Below, piece after piece: positions 30,302 through 40,696 of a stretch of 64,000 nt of DNA. The stretch comes from Salpingoeca rosetta (lineage: Eukaryota > Protista > Choanoflagellata), in assembly GCA_033442325.1 (NCBI GenBank), contig JAWQFM010000009.1:1614297-1678296 (forward strand). Direction: 5' to 3'. A program made the translations under genes and the position numbers. Each line of letters starts with the position of its first letter. The stretch's first letter is position 1. A model generated the notes under the pieces. It ran no database searches. It was not told the origin of the DNA and was given only the letters and a program-made list of their open reading frames with translations.

Positions 30302-30658
30302 CTAGGGTGGCCGGTTGTGCGAGTAGCGGCAGTTGCAGAAATGGGTGAACTTGCTGCACAGCAAGCAGAAGCCGACATCGCGTAGCTCAGCGGCAAGCTG
30401 TTCGAACAGGAGAGCCAGCAGGTCCTCGCTGCCGTCGATGTTGATGCGCGCCAGCAAGTTGATCACCCGGTACAGCTGTCCCCGAGTGCCACTCCGAAGA
30501 TTGCGCTCCAAGCGTTGCCTAAGCCTCTCCAATTCACGGACTGCCACACGTATCAACTCCTGCGCCTGCTCGCGTGTGATGCCGTGTATGTCGGGGCAAA
30601 ACGGGCTCATGCAATGCCGTCCATTCCCGCTCTTCACGCGCTTTGGTGGTGATGACAT
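30302..30658 (-). CDS. Small intronless Cys-rich protein A (118 aa), unnamed family
   Basis: ATG-to-stop ORF with non-repetitive sequence: 'GNGRHCMSPFCPD', a helical middle and 'LRDVGFCLLCSKFTHFCNCRY'. It is homologous to the ORF at 37790-38140. Confidence 0.7.
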   Translation of the reverse strand: MSSPPKRVKSGNGRHCMSPFCPDIHGITREQAQELIRVAVRELERLRQRLERNLRSGTRGQLYRVINLLARINIDGSEDLLALLFEQLAAELRDVGFCLLCSKFTHFCNCRYSHNRPP

Positions 30659-30953
30659 GTCAGCGTCTGCTGAGGGTGCTGCGCCTGAGAAGACTGCTGA
30701 GGCCGCTGATATGGTCGAGACTGCTCAGGCTGCTGCGGTTGGCGCGTTCCTCGCCACAGTGGGCTGAGTAGTGTGCTGGGGAACAAGGGCCGTGACGGTG
30801 GGGGCGACGAAGTATTGGTATTGGGGTTGCTGGCTTGGCTGGCTTGCTTCAACTGGTCGTGTGGCGGTCTGTCAGGCTGATGCAACGCGGTGTGCTGCTG
30901 GGCACAAGAAATGGATAACTAAGGCATGGCAGCTGCGCATGTGCACACGTCCC

Positions 30954-31011
30954 TGCTCGCGTGGCGCATGATCACGTGGCACCTGCACGTGTCAACGTGC
31001 ACATGGCCAGT
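30954..31011. promoter_or_regulatory. Putative cis-regulatory module upstream of ORF A
   Basis: Contains TGCTCGCGTG, CATGATCACGTGGC and GCACATGGCCAGT. Near-identical words occur upstream of ORF B. Confidence 0.4.
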
Positions 31012-31225
31012 CGGTGGGTTCACACACCATGCGCCCATGCGACAAACGACAAAAGGACAGCCGCACGCGACAAGAAAAAACACGTGGGTTTCGAATTTTT
31101 GTGACGACACCAGCACTTTATTTATTGATGATGTCACAACTGTAGAAGACAACATTGCACAATGCCCACAGCAGTGTTTGTATGCATGGATATGTGTACG
31201 TGTGTATGTATGGTGTGTGGATGCA

Positions 31226-33419
31226 TCAAGACAATAACTGGTGCATCACATCCCTGCTGATGGTGGGTTCTGATGCATGCCACGCTTCAAGATACGCCTG
31301 CAAGGGCGGTGTGTGTGTTCATGTGTGTGTGTTTGTGTGCGAATGATATGGGAACGTGGACAAGTCAATGTGTGAGCACATGTGTGTGTAATTTACGTGT
31401 GCAGTACAAGAGCGCACGTTGCTGATTCGCTTTCTGATGTGATTGTGCATGACAAGCCCAGCTGGTTTGTTTGCTTGCTTGCTTGGTTGTGACGATCCAC
31501 ATCAATCGTGGTGTGTTGTGACACACGCACCATCGCAACCAACCATGTCCCCCTCAAACACAGACACACACGCACACGCACACGCACACACACAGACACA
31601 ACCTTGGAGAGGAGCTGGTGGATGCGAGCGCCTGAGAAGCCGCTGGTCTGCTGCACCAGCCACTCCACATCCTCTTTCTGCCACCGCACGAAACAGGGAG
31701 GGAGGGCAAGGGGGTTCATGTGAACACATCAAGTACACGTCATTATCATCGCCGTCGTCATCAGCAGCAGCAGCACCAGCAGCACCAACAACAACTTAAN
31801 NNNNNNNNNNNNNNNNNNNNNNNNNNNNNNNNNNNNNNNNNNNNNNNNNNNNNNNNNNNNNNNNNNNNNNNNNNNNNNNNNNNNNNNNNNNNNNNNNNNN
31901 NNNNNNNNNNNNNNNNNNNNNNNNNNNNNNNNNNNNNNNNNNNNNNNNNNNNNNNNNNNNNNNNNNNNNNNNNNNNNNNNNNNNNNNNNNNNNNNNNNNN
32001 NNNNNNNNNNNNNNNNNNNNNNNNNNNNNNNNNNNNNNNNNNNNNNNNNNNNNNNNNNNNNNNNNNNNNNNNNNNNNNNNNNNNNNNNNNNNNNNNNNNN
32101 NNNNNNNNNNNNNNNNNNNNNNNNNNNNNNNNNNNNNNNNNNNNNNNNNNNNNNNNNNNNNNNNNNNNNNNNNNNNNNNNNNNNNNNNNNNNNNNNNNNN
32201 NNNNNNNNNNNNNNNNNNNNNNNNNNNNNNNNNNNNNNNNNNNNNNNNNNNNNNNNNNNNNNNNNNNNNNNNNNNNNNNNNNNNNNNNNNNNNNNNNNNN
32301 NNNNNNNNNNNNNNNNNNNNNNNNNNNNNNNNNNNNNNNNNNNNNNNNNNNNNNNNNNNNNNNNNNNNNNNNNNNNNNNNNNNNNNNNNNNNNNNNNNNN
32401 NNNNNNNNNNNNNNNNNNNNNNNNNNNNNNNNNNNNNNNNNNNNNNNNNNNNNNNNNNNNNNNNNNNNNNNNNNNNNNNNNNNNNNNNNNGGCCTGCCCG
32501 AGCGCAGCTTGCAGCAATCAAGACACAAAAGCACACACACACACACACACAACCACACACACACACGCACGCACACACAACCACACACACACACATACCC
32601 CGTACCTGCTGTGTGCTGCGGCGGCCCTGGTTGGCGCAAAGGCGTCGATGCCGTCAAAGAGAACAACAGACGGGCGGGCGCTGCGGGCAGAGGAAAACAG
32701 GCGCCGTATGTTCTCCTCCGTCTCCCCGAGATACTTGCTGAACACGTCCGTCGCCTGACACAGCACACACACACAGTCATGGCGCGTGAGCAGAGGCAAC
32801 ATCAAGCGCGTGCACGGAGTGTAAACAATTACAGGCAAACACAGGCGCAGCATATGCAGGCGTGCACAAATACAAACCCGCGTACCCGCGCGTACCCGCG
32901 CGTAACCACCACACACACACACACACACCAACATACACCATGCAGCACGTACGGAAACGGCAAAGACGGGGAGGTTGAGGCGGTTGATGATGGTGAGGGC
33001 GAGCAGGGTCTTGCCGCAGCCTGGGGGCCCATGCAGCAGCAGCCCCGACGGCGGCGTCAGCCCAAGCGCCTGCAACGACCCTCGCCGCCAGCTCTCAACA
33101 ACAGCCATCACCCGCGCGTGCGTGCTCTGGTAACCGGCAAACGCGCAGGGCGGCACGGTGTTGCGGCTCGGGTGCAGCAGCGGCGCCCACTGCGACGACG
33201 ACGACGACGACGATGATGGTGGTGGTGGTGTGCAGGTCAACAGGGGTGGCAACCGTGACGACGATGGCGGTGCTGGTGCTCCGTGCTGTTGCTGCTGTGG
33301 TGGTGGTGGCGGCGGCGGTGGTCGTAGGTCGATGCGGGTGTCAAAGTATGGCGGACTGAGCAGCGCACGTGCCACCAGCCCTGGGCGACGACACGTGCCG
33401 ATCACAGCAACCTGCACAT

Positions 33420-33464
<45 letters not shown>

Positions 33465-33680
33465 TGTGCTTTGGGATGTCGCCTAGCATGGCGTGACAAG
33501 CCACACGCGTCTGCGCCGCTGCGTGAGCAATGGTGGTCAACATACGTTATTGGCGAGGGCTGTGTCGATGAGCTGCAGAACAGCCTGCAGCAAGTTGTGC
33601 TTCCATTTCAGCGTGTCCACGTTGTCCAGCACTGAAGTTGTTCAGCGTCATGGGTAGTGCGCGTTAAGCTGAACACACAC

Positions 33681-33732
<52 letters not shown>

Positions 33733-34260
33733 ACACACACACACAAAACATTGTCTGACCGAGCAGCTGCGGTGATGATGGTGTGCCATGTGCTGGTGGT
33801 TGTGCTGTCGACAAGGATGCTTCCAGCTCGCCCTTTGCACGATCTAGTTCCTGCAAACACACACAGAATGATGCAATCATGTGAGCGTGAGCGTGGGCAA
33901 ACGACGAAGCAAGGTTGCGCACACGCAGTGCACGCAGCTCATGCAGGCGCAAATGGATGAGGACGACGCAGATGATGGTGCATACCGAAACCGTGCGAGG
34001 CCAGTTTGCAGCATCTTCAAACTTGTTCAGCAGCTGCAGGCGGCGCACACGCCATGATGGCGTGGATGCCATCAACTCCTCAACGAGTCTCGTCTGCACA
34101 GTGCCAACAACACAGGCAAAGGGAAGCAGCGACGTGAACAAGTGAGGTTGCATTATGATGTGCAACAACAACGTCAACAAAAAGGTTTAGCAAAAGCAGA
34201 CAACGCACGCCAAGAAACACACACATACACACACATACGCACACACATACGCACACACAT

Positions 34261-34345
<85 letters not shown>

Positions 34346-34420
34346 TGAGACCTTGCCACTGTGTCGTGGTCCGGCCAGCAGCGTGCAGCATGGCACTGGC
34401 CTTTGTATTCTTCTTCTTCT

Positions 34421-34468
<48 letters not shown>

Positions 34469-34771
34469 ACCACTACTACTGCTGCTCCCTGCCTTCTTCT
34501 TAGATGCATCTTCTTCGCCCTTGTCCACATTGCTCTCCTTCCCCCCAGTCGATTCCACTGATGCCACTGTTTCTTCTGGCTCATCCTCAATCACCGCCCC
34601 CAGTACCACCACCCTTGTCCTCAACTGTTGCAGCAACGCCTCTCGCTGCTGCTCCTGCTGTTGCAACTGCTGCTCCTGCTCCTGCTGTTGCTGCAGATCA
34701 TCACTGCGGCCATGACCGCCACTGCCACCACTGCGACCGCTGCCGTCGTCCTCGTGTGGCTTCATCATCAT
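31226..34771 (-). CDS. AAA+ ATPase of the CDC48/AFG2(SPATA5)/NVL-like type with a degenerate first module; multi-exon, spans an N-gap
   Basis: 'LGLTPPSGLLLHGPPGCGKTLLA' (Walker A), 'ATDVFSKYLGETEENIRRLFSSAR' (pore loop), 'VVLFDGIDAF' (altered Walker B) and a lid 'VEWLVQQTSGFSGARIHQLLSK|AYLEAWHASEPTISRDVMHQLLS*'. Upstream D1 remnants are 'VLDNVDTL' and 'VIGTCRRPGLVARALLSPPYFDTRIDL'. Confidence 0.8.
31801..32490. other. Assembly gap (N run)
   Basis: N characters. Confidence 1.
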
Positions 34772-34835
34772 CCTCTGTGTCGTGTCGGATATGCTTGAAC
34801 AGCACAATTTTCTTCCCCTTTGCAACCGAGTGTTG

Positions 34836-34907
34836 GGGCCCATAGCTCAGTGGTAGAGCGCGTGCTTTGCATGCACGATGTCCCGGGTTCAATCCCCGGT
34901 GGGTCCA
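34836..34907 (+). tRNA. tRNA-Ala (anticodon TGC)
   Basis: Acceptor stem GGGCCCA/TGGGTCC with the G3:U70 alanine identity pair, D-arm TAGCTCAGTGGTAGAGC, anticodon arm CGTGC-TT TGC AT-GCACG, T-arm GGTTCAATCC. Confidence 0.97.
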
Positions 34908-34908
34908 C

Positions 34909-34913
34909 TTTTT
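34909..34913 (+). terminator. RNA polymerase III oligo-T terminator
   Basis: TTTTT immediately after the tRNA. Confidence 0.8.
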
Positions 34914-35359
34914 GTTTTTCTTCTTCATTCATGCTCAGCCGTGTTGTGTTGCTTCTGCAATCACATCAACTGCGCACTCACAACTTCCAGCAACCATGCA
35001 GCGCACCATGCACAACTTCCAGCGCAGCAGCCTCTCCCTTTGAGCACAATAACTGCTGCGTGTGATGCTGTTGTGATGCTGCTGTGATGGGATGTGAGAC
35101 AAGCACCATTGACCAAACCCGGCGCCACGCACTCCCAGAAGTCGCCCCCTCTCGTGTTTGACTCGCCCAACGCCCACACAAGCACACAAGCGCGCACATT
35201 GGCAGTGCAGCGTGTTGTTGCACTGCAGCTCAGCTGCTTCCAGCCAACAACCCATCCTTTTCCCAATCCCCTGTCCACGCTCGTTCACACACACACACAC
35301 GCACACACACACACACGCACACACACATACACACACACATACACACACACACACGCAGC

Positions 35360-37075
35360 ATGAAGTTCTTCAGCCATGATCTGGCTGTGCTGTGTGGGGT
35401 CGTGTGCCTGCCCATCGGCTGCATGATTGTCGGCTCCCTCACCGCCTATTTCTACGCGCCTGGGCGCCGCGTGCGCTGCTGCTTCGGCTCCTTGGCCGCA
35501 GGCTTGCTGGTGGCCTCGCTCTTCTTCGAGCTGGTCCCGCTGGCAACCAAGAGCCTGGACACGCCGCACGCCGTCGCCGTCGTCGTTGGCCTGGCCGTGG
35601 CCGGCGGTATGGTGATCATCCTCGACGTCGCCGAGGACCGCATCGCGCAGGCGCATGAGAGGGCGCAGGACGAGCGCCGGCGCCAGCAGCGCGAGCGGAG
35701 GGAGAGGCAGCTGCAGAACCTCCTGGAGAAGCAGCAGCAGCCCCGTCCTGCAGAACCCAGCAAGACCAGCAGTGCCAGCCATGCAGCGCCCAACGGCAAA
35801 CCTCACACTACAGCAACCACAAGCGCCGCCATGGGCGAACGTGATGCAGCACACGCCAAGGCACACGACTACGACGCACAGCTCAACAACACCAACAACC
35901 TGACGCACCCGCAACATCAGCCACCTGCTGAGTCACCCAGCGTCAATGCGCCAGGTGGCATGCCATACTCTCGGTTTCCGTTTGCAGACATGGGCCAGCA
36001 CACGCCCTCGATGCTCATGGTGGCGCCGCCGTCGCTGTCAACATCATCCCCATCAGCATCATCGCCTTCGCCTTCGACCCCGGGAACACCTTTGACCCCG
36101 CCGCATGCGCGTGCAGACAATGACAACACGCCACCATCATCGGCACCTCTGTTAGCGTCCTCGTCACCACCACGACCACCGCCAGCATCATCTCAAGGAA
36201 CACAACCAACATCGCACCCAACATCACAACCAGCGTCACAGCCACAGCTGCCTTCTCACACAACGGATCACAGCCGTGCGTGGTCCACAGCGTCGCCGTC
36301 GGGTCAGCGCCGTCACCACCACCCGCGCTGTGTGCGCGGCGGTCGCAGGCGGCGCAGGCGTGTGGGCAGCGACAATGCCGACGATGCAGAGCAGCAGCCG
36401 CTGTTGACAGATGCAAGCAGCGTGTACAGCGCCGCAACCATCAACAACCCGCCCATCGAGTATCTGGCTGGCGAGCACTCGCTTGCGGAGAGCATTGACG
36501 CCGGCGTGTGGGACGGGCGGCGGCCGCTGCGCCTGCGCCGCACCACCTCTGCTCCGCCGGCCCCGCTGCCCGTGTCGCGGCGACGGCGCCTGCCGCACCC
36601 GGGGACGGGCGACTTCCCGCTGGGTGCCGCGGTGCTCATCGCGCTGGACGGAATGAGCGACGGGCTGGTCATTGGCGTGACCTCGTCCCTCACCCTGACG
36701 CAGGGTCTGGTGGTGAGCGGCTCGCTGGCCATGGAGATGTGCATCACGGGCGCAGCGCTCTCCAGCATCTTGTACAAGCACGGCGTGCAGCGGCGGGTGG
36801 CTGTCCCGTGCCTGGTTGCCATCCCCTTCACCATGCTCCTTGGTGCGTGGCTTGGGCGCGCCGTCATCCTTGCCATCTCCCGCTCGTCGGCTATCTTCTC
36901 TGGCATTGTTGCCTTCACCGTGGGCCAGATCACATACCTCGCCACGACGCAGCTCTACTCCGACTCGTATCAGGAGGCCAAGGCCGGCAGCTCCGCCCTT
37001 GCGCGCGCGTGCGCAGCCTTCTTCTTTGGCGGCCTCATCGCCGGCTTTTGCATGAACACGTTTCTTCCCGAATGA
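35360..37075 (+). CDS. ZIP-family (ZupT/GufA-like) divalent metal transporter, single exon, 571 aa with a very long cytoplasmic loop
   Basis: 3+5 transmembrane layout: 'GSLAAGLLVASLFFELVPLA' (TM2), a long Pro/Ser/His-rich loop, 'LIALDGMSDGLVIG' (TM4), 'SLAMEMCITG' (TM5), 'AFTVGQITYLATTQL' (TM7) and 'AFFFGG' (TM8). Confidence 0.85.
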   Translation: MKFFSHDLAVLCGVVCLPIGCMIVGSLTAYFYAPGRRVRCCFGSLAAGLLVASLFFELVPLATKSLDTPHAVAVVVGLAVAGGMVIILDVAEDRIAQAHERAQDERRRQQRERRERQLQNLLEKQQQPRPAEPSKTSSASHAAPNGKPHTTATTSAAMGERDAAHAKAHDYDAQLNNTNNLTHPQHQPPAESPSVNAPGGMPYSRFPFADMGQHTPSMLMVAPPSLSTSSPSASSPSPSTPGTPLTPPHARADNDNTPPSSAPLLASSSPPRPPPASSQGTQPTSHPTSQPASQPQLPSHTTDHSRAWSTASPSGQRRHHHPRCVRGGRRRRRRVGSDNADDAEQQPLLTDASSVYSAATINNPPIEYLAGEHSLAESIDAGVWDGRRPLRLRRTTSAPPAPLPVSRRRRLPHPGTGDFPLGAAVLIALDGMSDGLVIGVTSSLTLTQGLVVSGSLAMEMCITGAALSSILYKHGVQRRVAVPCLVAIPFTMLLGAWLGRAVILAISRSSAIFSGIVAFTVGQITYLATTQLYSDSYQEAKAGSSALARACAAFFFGGLIAGFCMNTFLPE

Positions 37076-37142
37076 AACAGACGCGCGGTCGTGTGTCTGT
37101 GTGTGTGTCTGTGTGTGTTTGTGTGTGTTGGGCATGTGTGTA

Positions 37143-37192
<50 letters not shown>

Positions 37193-37789
37193 TGTGTGTG
37201 TGTGTGTGTGTGTGTGTTGTGTCGTGCACATGTATGGATGCACCCCGTGCGCGTGTGCGTGTTGGATCCTTGGATGATGCCCTCATATCCTGACAGCGCT
37301 GACCGTCGTGCACTGTATCGTTGGCGTGAACTTCGTGCGGCCATCCCTTGGTCTGTGCCAGACCGTTGATTTCCCCCTTTCACTGTCGCGCAACGACGTG
37401 TCCGTCCACCCACGCATGTTGTTGTGTTGCTGTGTATTTGTCGTCTCGCCCACCCCCTGTTCCTCCGGCACGGCTTTGCACGGTGTGGGCCGTTTGACTT
37501 GGGATACGAAAGCACTTCGTTTACTTGGTTCACTTGATATTCAATGTGCAATGTGATGTGAGCGGGTGCTCGTGCCAATCCATGTAAACGGACTTGATGC
37601 GCAGAGACACCAGACACGCAAGCATGCACGTGTGTTGAGCAGGCAGACATGAGGGAGGGGCATCAACAAAAGGGAACAGCCCCAAGGTACGGTACTGGAT
37701 AGGGTGGACACCGTAAGTAAGAGGCACCCTTGCCAGGAAAGGCACAGCAGTCTCCCAAACTTGATGCAAGGGTCGCTTGTCGCCAGACG

Positions 37790-38140
37790 TCATGATGACG
37801 GCCTTGGAAGAGGGTTGCGGCGATAGCAGCACTCACAAGCGTTGACCAGACAGAAGCAAAACACACAGAATCCCTCAGCCATCAGTCGGTCCAGTGCATT
37901 GACGGTCAGAGAAGCACGGTGCAATTGGCGATACACTGAAAGAGCAATCACTGCTTTCCTGTCACTTGGGTTTCGCGCCACTACAGCTCCAACGGTTTCA
38001 CAGCATTGTCGCAGGTGCTCCTGTGCTCTTGGTAAGCACTGGATCAGCTCCCTGTCTGTCATCTTGCAGAACTCGGGGCAGAACTGGGCGGTGCAGCATT
38101 TGCCAGGACCAAGCCGGGGGCACGGATAAGGGCGCGACAT
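37790..38140 (-). CDS. Small intronless Cys-rich protein B (116 aa), same family as A
   Basis: 'MSRPYPCPRLGPGKCCTAQFCPE...LMAEGFCVFCFCLVNACECCYRRNP'. Motifs are collinear with ORF A. Confidence 0.7.
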   Translation of the reverse strand: MSRPYPCPRLGPGKCCTAQFCPEFCKMTDRELIQCLPRAQEHLRQCCETVGAVVARNPSDRKAVIALSVYRQLHRASLTVNALDRLMAEGFCVFCFCLVNACECCYRRNPLPRPSS

Positions 38141-38639
38141 GGTGCGATGGGAGAGATGCGCGCTGAGGAGCCAGGAAGTCAAGCGAGTCGGTTGTTTCGT
38201 GGTGGGCTGAGCTCGTCTAACTGGCGATGAAGAATGCCGAACACTGATGGAAGGTGGAGATAGCATTGAGGGTGATCACAGGGCACACGCAGAGACGGGG
38301 GAGTAAGAGGAACAGACATAGACATGGGCGTACACACAGCCAGATACACACGCATGCACACGCACGCACGCACATACATGCACACATACGCACGCACACA
38401 ATGCGAGTAACGCAGCAACAGGGTGCTTGAAGAGGCAAGGCGATGGGTGCAACTGAAGACAAACAGCACACCCGAACCTCCGACAGCAAGCGAGGACCAT
38501 GTCACACAGTTCAGCAGAGCCCACCTGTGCTGTGCTGGAGCGAAGAGCGCGGTGGAAAATGAAGTCCATGCCAAGGACACAGGCGATGGTCGGCTCAAGT
38601 CGCAAAGCTGCACGCCAGCTGTCACTGGCACGTGACGCG

Positions 38640-38681
38640 TGCTCGCGTGTGCGCATGGCCAGTATCACATGATCGCGTGGC
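38640..38681. promoter_or_regulatory. Putative cis-regulatory module upstream of ORF B (in the B/C divergent spacer)
   Basis: Contains TGCTCGCGTG, GCGCATGGCCAGT and CATGATCGCGTGGC. Confidence 0.4.
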
Positions 38682-39438
38682 GGCACATGTGCAGCACATG
38701 CATGATCGTGAGCGCGTGGCAAGTGCGTCGCCTGTTGTTGTTGTTGTCCACAGAAAACCCCTCAATGTAGTGGGCAAAAAAAATTACATTACACAATGTA
38801 CTTCTAAAGCCTAAAGCGCATGGCATGACGTCATCGACAGTACTGACGCGTGATTTCGCGTGCGTGCATGTTGACTGTCCACGTGTCGCTGTTCCTCTGT
38901 TCGCGGTGCACGTGTAATACCAGAATACCCTCCCTCATTTGTCCCTCGTGCGAGCAACCACGTGCTGTTCATGCTCCTTGCGTCTGCTGTCGGTGGTTCG
39001 CTGGTCATCATTTTCTCTTGTTCTTGTGTTGCTCACTTGCTCAGTCGCCTTCGTGTCCGTGAGTGGTTGCTTTTGGCTTATTGGCTTGCTCTCCTCTCCT
39101 CCTCCCTGCTCTCCTTGCTCTGCTCTGCACCCAACTCTCCTTCGAGGTGAGCAAGCGCCCATGCATTCGCCACACCCCACCACTCTTAGACTCTTGCACT
39201 GTCATCCATTGGCCTGATGCTCAGTTGCTCTCATCGCCATGGAGCTGGTGCCGCCCGTGAACTGCCTGTCATGCACCGTTGACACTCCTGCTGCTGCTGC
39301 TGTTGCTGCTGCCCACGCCCCCTGTCCTGACACGTGTGCGCAGTCTGCTCAAGCTAACCTGTCCCCCGCTGTTGTCCTCTCTCGTCTTGTGTGGATGGGC
39401 TTTGTTGCTGTGTTTGGGCGACATAGGAGCATCAAGAC

Positions 39439-39810
39439 ATGTTCCAGAACCGCGTCGTGTTCTGTCCGCATCACCGGTACAACCTGAGGATATGTGACCG
39501 GCTATATGACGAGATTGGACCGAACGCTGTGGGATACCATGAGGTTGTTCGAGCAGCCCAGTATCTGACCAACCTCAGACGCGATCTTGCAGCAGAAGTG
39601 AAGCGAGGCAAGAAAGGCGCCACGGAGCGCCTCGCAATTGTCAACATGGTTTCCTTTACTCTCGCACGACGACTTGAAGAGAGTCCCGAGCCTAAACCAG
39701 AGCATCTAGTCTTTGCGGCGCACGCAGTAGCCATATGCTTCAATTTTTGCGTGCTGTGCCTCTGCTTCAACCGAGCTGACTTCCATCCCAAAAATGATTC
39801 TTCTGATTCC

Positions 39811-39842
<32 letters not shown>

Positions 39843-39864
39843 CGATGACGACGACGAAGAGTAG
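39439..39864 (+). CDS. Small intronless Cys/His-rich protein C (141 aa) with a poly-Asp tail, probable distant member of the A/B family
   Basis: 'VFCPHHRYNLRIC', a helical middle, 'NFCVLCLCFNRADFH', then a DSSDS(D)nEE tail. Confidence 0.6.
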
Positions 39865-39978
39865 CCCTGTGGGACTTCTGGACTTGAGAATGACGTTTGT
39901 TTTCAAGAGGCCCATTTCGTAGCCCTTCGCTCCTCTCACCATCACTCGCCACATACCTGTCCTGTCCTTGTTGTCGCT

Positions 39979-40025
<47 letters not shown>

Positions 40026-40696
40026 GCTGTCTGTTTGCCGTGTACGTGTCTGAGCTCGCACGTATGTTGCCTCTACCCTTCGCTCTTGGGATTGCTGCTC
40101 ATTTCGTGGCTTTGTTGGCTTAGTCGACTTACTTGCAACTGGCTAACTGGAATACACATACAAGAAGCGTTAAATAGCAAGCACGGATGAAACCGGCTAT
40201 ACTGCGTTTGCGTTTCCTGCGTCGGTGAGTGTGTGTGTGTGTGTGTGTTTGTGTGAGTGAGTGAGTGTTTGTGTGTGTGAGTGTTTGTGAGTCGACAAGG
40301 AATGGGGTGGGAATGAAGCGTGGCGCTGACGTTGGCAGTAGCTGCTGCTACGGTGTCTCGACAAAGGAAGTTGGGCGTTTATGGTGCGAGATAACCAGGA
40401 GACGAAACAAAAGACGTGATATAACGAACGTCAGTCACAGTGGGTCGTAACTCAACAAAACACAGCCACAAGACGATGACGATCTTTGAGCGAAAGGCAC
40501 ACGAACAAGCAACAAAACAAAATAGTGGTGCAGCGACACGCTACTACAGCTCGGCGCTATTCACATCACATGATACAGGACGCATCAGACAGGAACGCGC
40601 CAACACTGCATTGCATGTAGTTGTTCCTGTTGGTGTCAATCAGAGCAGGCGATGGCAGGAAACGAAGAGGAGCAGCCAGAATCTGACCAAGAGTCG

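Follow-up and report, generated by a model that had tools for sequence, protein, structure and literature searches.

In Salpingoeca rosetta, the small proteins encoded by genes A, B, A' and B' appear to form a protein-coding family restricted to this species, with six conserved cysteines that are predicted to close a zinc-binding helical bundle. Two further genes, C and C', are probable relatives of this family, and B seems to escape the homogenisation that affects the DNA around it. We hold this combined reading with moderate confidence. Genes A, B and C are located in the window, a stretch of 64,000 nucleotides of contig JAWQFM010000009.1, and all three ORFs that an initial annotation of this DNA had placed there are present (Table 1).

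Table 1. Features of the analysed window (positions are those of the 64,000-nucleotide stretch).
Feature	Positions	Strand	Description and basis
Gene A	30302..30658	-	118 aa, A-type member; ORF and family alignment
Inverted repeat arm 1	31243..40164 (ends approximate)		Pairs with C9:1770781-1760699; arm alignment
AAA ATPase gene	31393..33543	-	Exons to the left and right of the gap; neighbour, outside the family
Assembly gap	31800..32490		Inside the AAA ATPase gene; flanks collinear with arm 2
ZIP zinc/iron transporter gene	35360..37075	+	PF02535; 571 aa, single exon, convergent with B
Gene B	37790..38140	-	116 aa from MSRP, B-type; hypothetical protein in GCA_000188695.1
Divergence island	37795..38095	-	B codons 16-116 compared with B'
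Gene C	39439..39864	+	141 aa; helical, FCP, FCxxC, poly-Asp tail

A family of four proteins with six invariant cysteines

A profile search of the 55-Mb S. rosetta genome returned exactly four intact ORFs, corresponding to A, B, A' and B'. The last two belong to a second cluster (A', C', B'), which this contig carries some 107 kb further downstream. This second cluster, the inverted repeat and the divergence island within the B coding sequence are all absent from the initial annotation.

The proposal that A and B align from end to end was supported by BLASTP (31% identity, E 3e-8) and by comparison with shuffled controls, in which the Smith-Waterman z was 13.7 and none of 1000 shuffles reached the observed score. 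A and A' matched each other with an E of 6.8e-10 genome-wide and a Smith-Waterman z of 22.4 (1000 shuffles), and the remaining pairs of A-type with B-type proteins gave z values of 14 to 15.5, the observed score being reached in 0 of 1000 shuffles. At identities of 26 to 60%, the four ORFs have all six Cys and their motifs in common, and the motifs quoted earlier for A and B can be read as given (MSxP, GxG[RK]xCx3FCP[DE] and Lx3GFCx2Cx6CxCxYx2N). The proteins are about 115 aa long, and their six invariant Cys are arranged in two motifs, Cx4CP towards the N-terminus and CxxCx6CxC towards the C-terminus, the invariant alignment columns including C16, F20, C21, P22, G96, F97, C98, C101, C108, C110 and Y112. 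About 75 residues, predicted to form three helices, separate the two Cys motifs. As had been claimed, the Cys positions are kept across the family alignment while the middle has diverged. The view of A and B as real, old paralogues also holds, with robust homology. Coding constraint is seen in the dN/dS of B against B' (see below), and pN is lower than pS in all six family pairs. The ORFs are indeed single-exon, and the B frame extends open up to 38266. However, the contrast once drawn between them and an intron-rich genome is weaker than claimed, because the adjoining 571-aa ZIP gene is also one open exon.

No existing family name could be attached to these proteins, in agreement with the initial annotation. 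Pfam searches with six proteins at E<=10 produced only noise, far below the gathering cut-offs, and neither PDB nor PHROGs yielded a match above noise. Among 5.8 billion protein clusters, only S. rosetta proteins matched the family, and an exhaustive HMM scan of 1.84 billion representatives found no relative outside S. rosetta, its two other hits being repeat proteins that scored through many weak stretches. Viral contigs and metagenome contigs likewise contained no relative. With no homologue outside S. rosetta in the libraries searched, the family appears to be an orphan, that is, taxonomically restricted. The zf-FCS/MYM-type and other Pfam families were discarded as candidates, as none matched at gathering score; the zf-FCS motif is FCSxxC, and the FCxxC spacing of the family differs from it. 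The suggested virus or transposon origin was also rejected, since there are no viral matches and the genes do not belong to any dispersed repeat.

Records of these genes elsewhere are few. A and A' are absent from the gene-product collection that includes the GCA_000188695.1 annotation, and neither PTSG_12244 nor PTSG_05034 is mentioned in the searchable literature. B' and C' are absent from one published differential-expression table, and of this locus the supplements of Fairclough 2013 list a single neighbouring gene, PTSG_05035 (ZIP'). Upstream of the genes, no motif of at least 9 nt was shared by three of A, A', B and C.

Gene C and its twin C'

Gene C, whose twin C' is PTSG_05034, carries the features first ascribed to it, namely an N-terminal FCP, an FCxxC close to the C-terminus and a poly-Asp tail. 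C and C' are probably distant members of the A/B family. The inclusion of C in the family stands as far as both motifs are concerned, which C' keeps as well, but the two proteins align with the family only at a borderline level. The A-C comparison gave a BLASTP E of 0.011 and a z of 3.6, with 6 of 1000 shuffles as good, and C showed no significant alignment with A', B or B' (Smith-Waterman, 1000 shuffles). Its score against the family profile was 3.1 bits, which 40 of 1000 shuffles also reached, and C was not reported by the genome-wide profile search at E<=10. In addition, C has neither the first Cys nor the Cx6CxC spacing.

These weak scores and missing positions would fit a C and C' unrelated to A and B, in which FCP and FCxxC are coincidental in a small helical, acidic-tailed neighbour of B. 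We consider this a serious alternative, with chances somewhat short of even. The A-C alignment speaks against it, and so does the occurrence of both motifs at the right ends, found in 1 of 100,000 shuffles of C for motifs that were picked post hoc. C also belongs to the size class of the family and has a helical middle in its model. Finally, C and C' lie close to family members: C is head to head with B, the start codons being 1.3 kb apart, and the distance to A' is 1.2 kb for C'.

A different lead came from a language-model feature search, in which C was linked to DUF3504, DUF3435 and Phage_int_SAM_1 clusters with scores of 0.85-0.92. This would liken C to the N-terminal domain of Crypton-type tyrosine recombinases, with a low count of shared features. 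In contrast, A and B gave no such hits in the feature search, and there is no recombinase gene nearby. C itself had no Pfam hit and no fold support, as an atlas fold search with its model returned only generic bundles (TM < 0.5 by query). Across the genome, DUF3504 gave a single sub-threshold match, on another contig. The Crypton reading of C was rejected, and the lead is treated as chance.

The inverted repeat and the divergence island in B

B and C are contained in arm 1 of an inverted repeat, together with the AAA ATPase gene, a tRNA-like spot and the ZIP gene. The two arms, of about 9 kb each and 107 kb apart, are 94-100% identical outside B (ungapped, 200-bp windows), and a 1-kb block of the ZIP gene (35528-36527) is 100% identical between them; a transposon-like insertion is present in one arm only. 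In the AAA ATPase gene, the AAA core with Walker A spans 32518-33543, and the match to the AAA lid (31393-31719) is weak and sub-threshold. The assembly gap within this gene overlaps none of A, B and C, and its counterpart in arm 2 consists of 884 bp with AAA exons and a long simple repeat coding for leucine and glutamine. An assembly artefact can be ruled out as the source of the repeat, since the older independent assembly GL832965.1 has both copies, in the same orientation.

High but uneven identity, combined with blocks of full identity, points to concerted evolution between the arms. The arms of inverted-repeat palindromes, such as those of sex chromosomes, are kept alike by gene conversion, and the genes in the arms are homogenised too. 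The S. rosetta repeat resembles these palindromes in its two inverted arms on one chromosome, their high identity and their patches of 100% identity, but differs from them in that one 300-bp coding stretch within the arms is about 34% diverged under purifying selection. A and A', which are very diverged, lie less than 1 kb outside their respective arms, which suggests that the paralogy of the loci far predates the present homogenisation. A tblastx search of the flanks for wider ancient paralogy returned only microsatellite-type hits, and a history of old duplication followed by concerted evolution is therefore not proven.

The diverged stretch covers codons 16-116 of B, where 105 of 306 sites differ from B' (about 34-35%) without any indels, compared with differences of 1.6-3.7% in the flanks (105/306 vs 30/1079, Fisher p 7e-49). 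Over these codons, dS is 0.94, dN 0.36 and dN/dS 0.39, and the two proteins share 60% amino-acid identity. These values indicate that B and B' form an old paralogous pair that is subject to purifying selection and is spared the surrounding homogenisation. Judged by these comparisons, the coding region of B is the only part of the arms in which an old divergence has persisted. The pattern would be consistent with selection, or a mismatch barrier, that keeps conversion from fusing two paralogues of distinct function. Transitions (54) and transversions (52) are balanced in the unbiased substitution spectrum, which rules out hypermutation of the DGR type. Conservation of hydrophobic compared with polar positions between B and B' did not differ significantly. 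None of the family comparisons gave a dN/dS above 1, which would have pointed directly to diversifying selection.

Alternatively, the island could be a replaced patch within a recent repeat, the coding part of one B copy having been overwritten through ectopic gene conversion by another divergent gene of the B type, since lost or missing from the assembly. Such an event would suit a stretch that is short (~300 bp), indel-free and wholly inside the coding sequence, the sole place where divergent paralogues share enough homology to start conversion, and it would also suit the nucleotide-identical blocks within the island. However, the genome contains only the four copies and no donor, A and A' being far more distant from B and B'. 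Furthermore, a single patch should be uniform, and the divergence of the island is graded, with a dS of 0.35 at codons 16-40 and of 1.1-1.3 beyond. The old A-type paralogues beside both arms also argue for a long-standing pairing of the loci. We consider replacement rather unlikely and favour old paralogues that have escaped conversion.

Predicted structure and possible roles

The initial annotation had envisaged a helical hairpin clamped by zinc. The AF2 model agrees with the helical character but not with the hairpin, as it consists of three helices (29-50, 56-71 and 78-94) and a small C-terminal Cys hairpin at CxxC, with a short helix after CxC. Confidence is low, with pLDDT values of 64 and 61 in two models and below 50 for residues 1-20 of the A model. 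Around C98, C101, C108 and C110, residues 97-98 and 103-104 are modelled as strands and residues 111-114 as a helix, with a pLDDT of only about 50-72. Fold searches with the A model found only generic helical bundles (Z < 8) and no Foldseek match at E<=0.001, and the atlas structure search with B stayed at TM < 0.5 by query. A prediction of the B-C complex scored 0.09 and returned no complex, which counts neither way.

The C-terminal part as predicted would be similar to zinc knuckles and treble clefs, with CxxC on a predicted beta-hairpin, a further pair of Cys immediately ahead of a short helix, and a Cys spacing that is invariant while the remainder diverges. It differs from them in that neither sequence nor fold searches gave a match to a family of this kind and in that the putative ligands, Cx4C...CxxCx6CxC, are split by a helical bundle of about 75 residues. 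Zinc binding by the conserved Cys is plausible on this model. In the mechanism that we consider most likely, the two Cys motifs would bind zinc and thereby hold a small helical bundle closed at its ends, and its rapidly diverging helices would provide the surface through which a small adaptor or regulator contacts its partners.

The conserved Cys might instead form disulfides, hold an Fe-S cluster or carry S-acyl lipid anchors, with no zinc involved. Gene A encodes exactly six Cys, each at one of the six conserved positions of the family, and B and B' have 14 and 11, many of them outside these positions, so that disulfides, acylation or Fe-S binding are possible; clusters of the CC and CxC kind are frequent as motifs of acylation or Fe-S binding. 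Against this, the sequences show hydrophilic N-termini without a signal-peptide-like stretch, so that the proteins are presumably intracellular and an oxidising compartment is unlikely, and the low-confidence model places CxxC on a hairpin followed by a helix, like zinc knuckles. We judge a zinc-free role of these residues to be unlikely and retain the putative zinc-binding bundle as the preferred reading. That the ORFs are non-functional (chance ORFs, pseudogenes, or virus or transposon relics) is highly improbable: A and A' are absent from a collection including the public annotation, and a lack of relatives is typical of doubtful ORFs, but four intact ORFs keep six Cys and their motifs at such low identity, B and B' are constrained at a high dS, and there are neither viral hits nor membership of a dispersed repeat.

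The paired arms also invite comparison with yeast MAT cassettes and flip-flop MAT loci, in which unrelated (idiomorphic) centres with shared flanks are subject to position-dependent expression or switching. Here too, a centre that differs is bordered by nearly identical sequence, and the DNA between two inverted repeats of one chromosome could be flipped. However, the B and B' centres are homologous and thus not idiomorphs, which led us to reject a mating-type-like cassette pair. Moreover, the proteins are not known regulators, there is no evidence of inversion or switching, and the two assemblies have the same orientation. It is very doubtful that B and B' are selected alternative specificity determinants (for cell type, mating or self-recognition) that are kept distinct despite continual gene conversion in the arms of a 107-kb invertible palindrome, with A, A', C and C' as partners; if this were true, the locus would be the first of its kind described in a choanoflagellate. 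A function in cell identity or recognition would be of interest for research on animal origins.

The locus provides a defined orphan family of four to six genes with a clear Cys signature, two members of which are missing from the public-annotation collection. It also represents a natural experiment, in which a 300-bp coding stretch is about 35% different inside DNA apparently kept near-identical by gene conversion. This pattern may be taken as evidence for synthesis of the proteins and for a B-B' difference that either matters or protects itself.

A species-restricted family of small Cys-rich proteins

The initial annotation had described three small ORFs in the window (A, B and C), and all three were recovered at exactly those positions (see the table). 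As it had claimed, A and B align end to end (31% identity, E 3e-8), and the motifs quoted for the pair are found as written. A six-frame profile search of the 55.4-Mb assembly returned exactly four copies genome-wide, every one an intact ORF: A, B and two counterparts about 107 kb downstream on the same contig, A' and B'. They fall into two subtypes, A with A' and B with B'. Smith-Waterman scores against 1000 shuffles gave z values of 22.4 for A-A', 13.7 for A-B and 14 to 15.5 for the remaining A-type/B-type pairs, and none of the 1000 shuffles equalled the observed scores. B' corresponds to PTSG_12244, a hypothetical protein of Salpingoeca rosetta, and neither A nor A' is recorded as a gene product in the collection to which the public annotation of this species (GCA_000188695.1) belongs. 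In copy 1, that annotation also has a same-strand 52-aa multi-exon model (38217-38656, minus strand) just 5' of B, which copy 2 lacks; the model may in fact represent B's 5' UTR.

Coordinates of the ORFs, repeat arms and neighbouring features. Plain coordinates are window positions, C9 is the contig numbering (the window spans C9:1614297-1678296), and L002 is local numbering.
Feature	Position	Strand	Description
A	30302-30658	-	118 aa, family ORF
B	37790-38140	-	116 aa counted from MSRP, family ORF
C	39439-39864	+	141 aa ORF
A'	C9:1759412-1759741; also L002:1492-1830	-	112 aa, intact ORF
B'	C9:1762694-1763032	+	116 aa, intact ORF
Arm 1	~31243-40164		inverted repeat, approximate
Arm 2	C9:1770781-1760699	inverted	~107 kb downstream of arm 1
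Assembly gap	31800-32490		between A and B; overlaps none of the three ORFs
AAA core with Walker A	32518-33543	-	PF00004, E 1.4e-19
AAA-lid match	31393-31719	-	weak, sub-threshold

The family was rightly called unnamed. Nothing above noise was found in Pfam (all six proteins, E<=10), in PDB sequences with the family profile, in PHROGs, in viral and metagenome contigs or, beyond S. rosetta, among 5.8 billion protein clusters. When 1.84 billion representatives were scanned exhaustively by HMM, the hits were limited to the S. rosetta protein and a pair of long tandem-repeat proteins; we do not accept this pair as relatives because their score is the sum of many weak stretches. One source of the searched protein collection was EukProt, which we presume may include the published choanoflagellate transcriptomes; provided that it does, these transcriptomes lack the family at the sensitivity of HMMER. 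The A/B family is thus species-restricted and of an ordinary kind, that of lineage-restricted small Cys-rich proteins. The suggestion of a virus- or transposon-derived gene set is rejected, as the viral and PHROGs searches were empty and the genes are not dispersed repeats.

A divergence island inside an inverted repeat

Either arm of the inverted repeat carries an AAA ATPase gene, a tRNA-like spot, a single-exon ZIP zinc/iron transporter gene (PF02535) and the B- and C-type ORFs. Measured without gaps in 200-bp windows, arm-to-arm identity is 94-100% everywhere except in the B coding sequence. Within the ZIP gene, 1 kb (35528-36527) is 100% identical between arms and the adjoining stretches 94-98%, so that this segment looks like a recent gene-conversion tract; the uneven arm identity indicates that conversion between the arms is continuing.

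From codon 16 of B to its last sense codon (38095-37795), 105 of 306 sites differ from B' with zero indels, against 7/435, 1/45 and 22/599 bp in the adjacent stretches (Fisher p 7e-49). Changes are most frequent at third codon positions, and the divergence is graded, with a dS of 0.35 over codons 16-40 and of 1.1-1.3 beyond (island dS 0.94, dN 0.36). An assembly artefact, neutral decay and targeted A-biased hypermutation are dismissed in turn, since the older, independent assembly GL832965.1 also contains both copies, dN/dS is 0.39, and all substitution classes occur (54 transitions and 52 transversions). The island is thus old protein-coding divergence within young or homogenised DNA. To find such an island confined to coding sequence, within an otherwise homogenised palindrome, is unusual, and the pattern can be put to the test.

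We favour, as the probable history, two anciently paralogous loci whose arms were homogenised by conversion while B escaped, either through selection against merged copies or because the 35% mismatch itself would block heteroduplex formation. A and A' share 33% identity with unalignable flanks, and each lies less than 1 kb outside its arm; so divergent a pair beside the arms implies a relationship between the loci far older than their present identity. This relationship, the lack of a donor in the genome and the graded divergence make it unlikely that the repeat is recent and that a third B-type gene, missing today, overwrote one of the two B copies; the profile search found no candidate for such a donor beyond the four copies. 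Two points nevertheless speak against ancient paralogy: the flanks hold no other old paralogue pairs, and A and A' adjoin opposite arm ends, which requires an extra inversion.

Predicted fold and the status of C

The four genes are real coding genes under constraint; their products share six invariant Cys around a helical middle that varies. The columns invariant in A, B, A' and B' are M1, S2, G11, C16, F20, C21, P22, T28, E34, L35, L46, G96, F97, C98, C101, C108, C110 and Y112, and the six Cys of A are exactly the conserved six. On direct reading, the N-termini are hydrophilic and show nothing resembling a signal peptide. AlphaFold2, run on the four-sequence alignment, gave a pLDDT of 64, with helices at 29-50, 56-71 and 78-94, the CxxC on a small hairpin and the CxC followed by a short helix; residues 1-20 were modelled without any confidence. 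Structure searches returned generic helical bundles only (Z < 8), Foldseek gave zero matches at E<=0.001, and an atlas search stayed at TM < 0.5 by query. From this anatomy, a zinc-stabilised three-helix bundle is a reasonable hypothesis. The two Cys motifs would bind metal and clamp the small bundle, and we give a zinc clamp of this kind an even chance. The variable helices might bind partners, and B and B' could have distinct specificities; any specific cellular role is very doubtful.

By alignment, C is a borderline case. It aligns with A at E 0.011 (z 3.6, reached by 6/1000 shuffles), its pairs with the other three proteins are not significant in the shuffle test, and its 3.1 bits against the family profile were matched by 40/1000 shuffles. 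Yet both motifs that never vary in the family, FCP near the N-terminus and FCxxC near the C-terminus, stand at the correct ends of C, an arrangement reached by only 1 in 100,000 of its shuffles in a post-hoc test. Its middle is predicted to be helical; B is 1.3 kb away and A' 1.2 kb. On balance, we lean towards membership. C has a single twin, C' (PTSG_05034 of S. rosetta; 97% identity), located between A' and B', and everything else that C hits in the genome matches the poly-Asp tail. A language-model search with C pointed to Crypton-type recombinase domains, but neither Pfam nor the fold and genome searches bore this out.

The assembly gap and neighbouring features

The gap lies inside the minus-strand AAA gene, and the reading-frame question that it raises is confined to that gene. 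Its sides are collinear with the second copy, where 884 sequenced bases separate them, so the gap flanks are continuous in order and orientation. That second-copy stretch (L026:4290-5173, local numbering) contains more AAA-like exons together with a long leucine/glutamine-coding simple repeat. By this comparison, the gap hides AAA ATPase exons and probably also such a repeat, which likely caused it.

Arm 2 alone carries an insertion of ~835 bp (L026:860-1730 = C9:1765860-1766730, opposite window ~34974-35004), adjoining the tRNA-like spot. At least eight near-full-length copies of this dispersed element lie on other contigs (97-99% identity), so that it is probably a solo LTR or a young transposon. 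At 34820-34900 in the window, the ORF translation resembles what is usually obtained when a tRNA gene is translated as if it were coding. B neighbours the ZIP gene, an adjacency that may be a coincidence.
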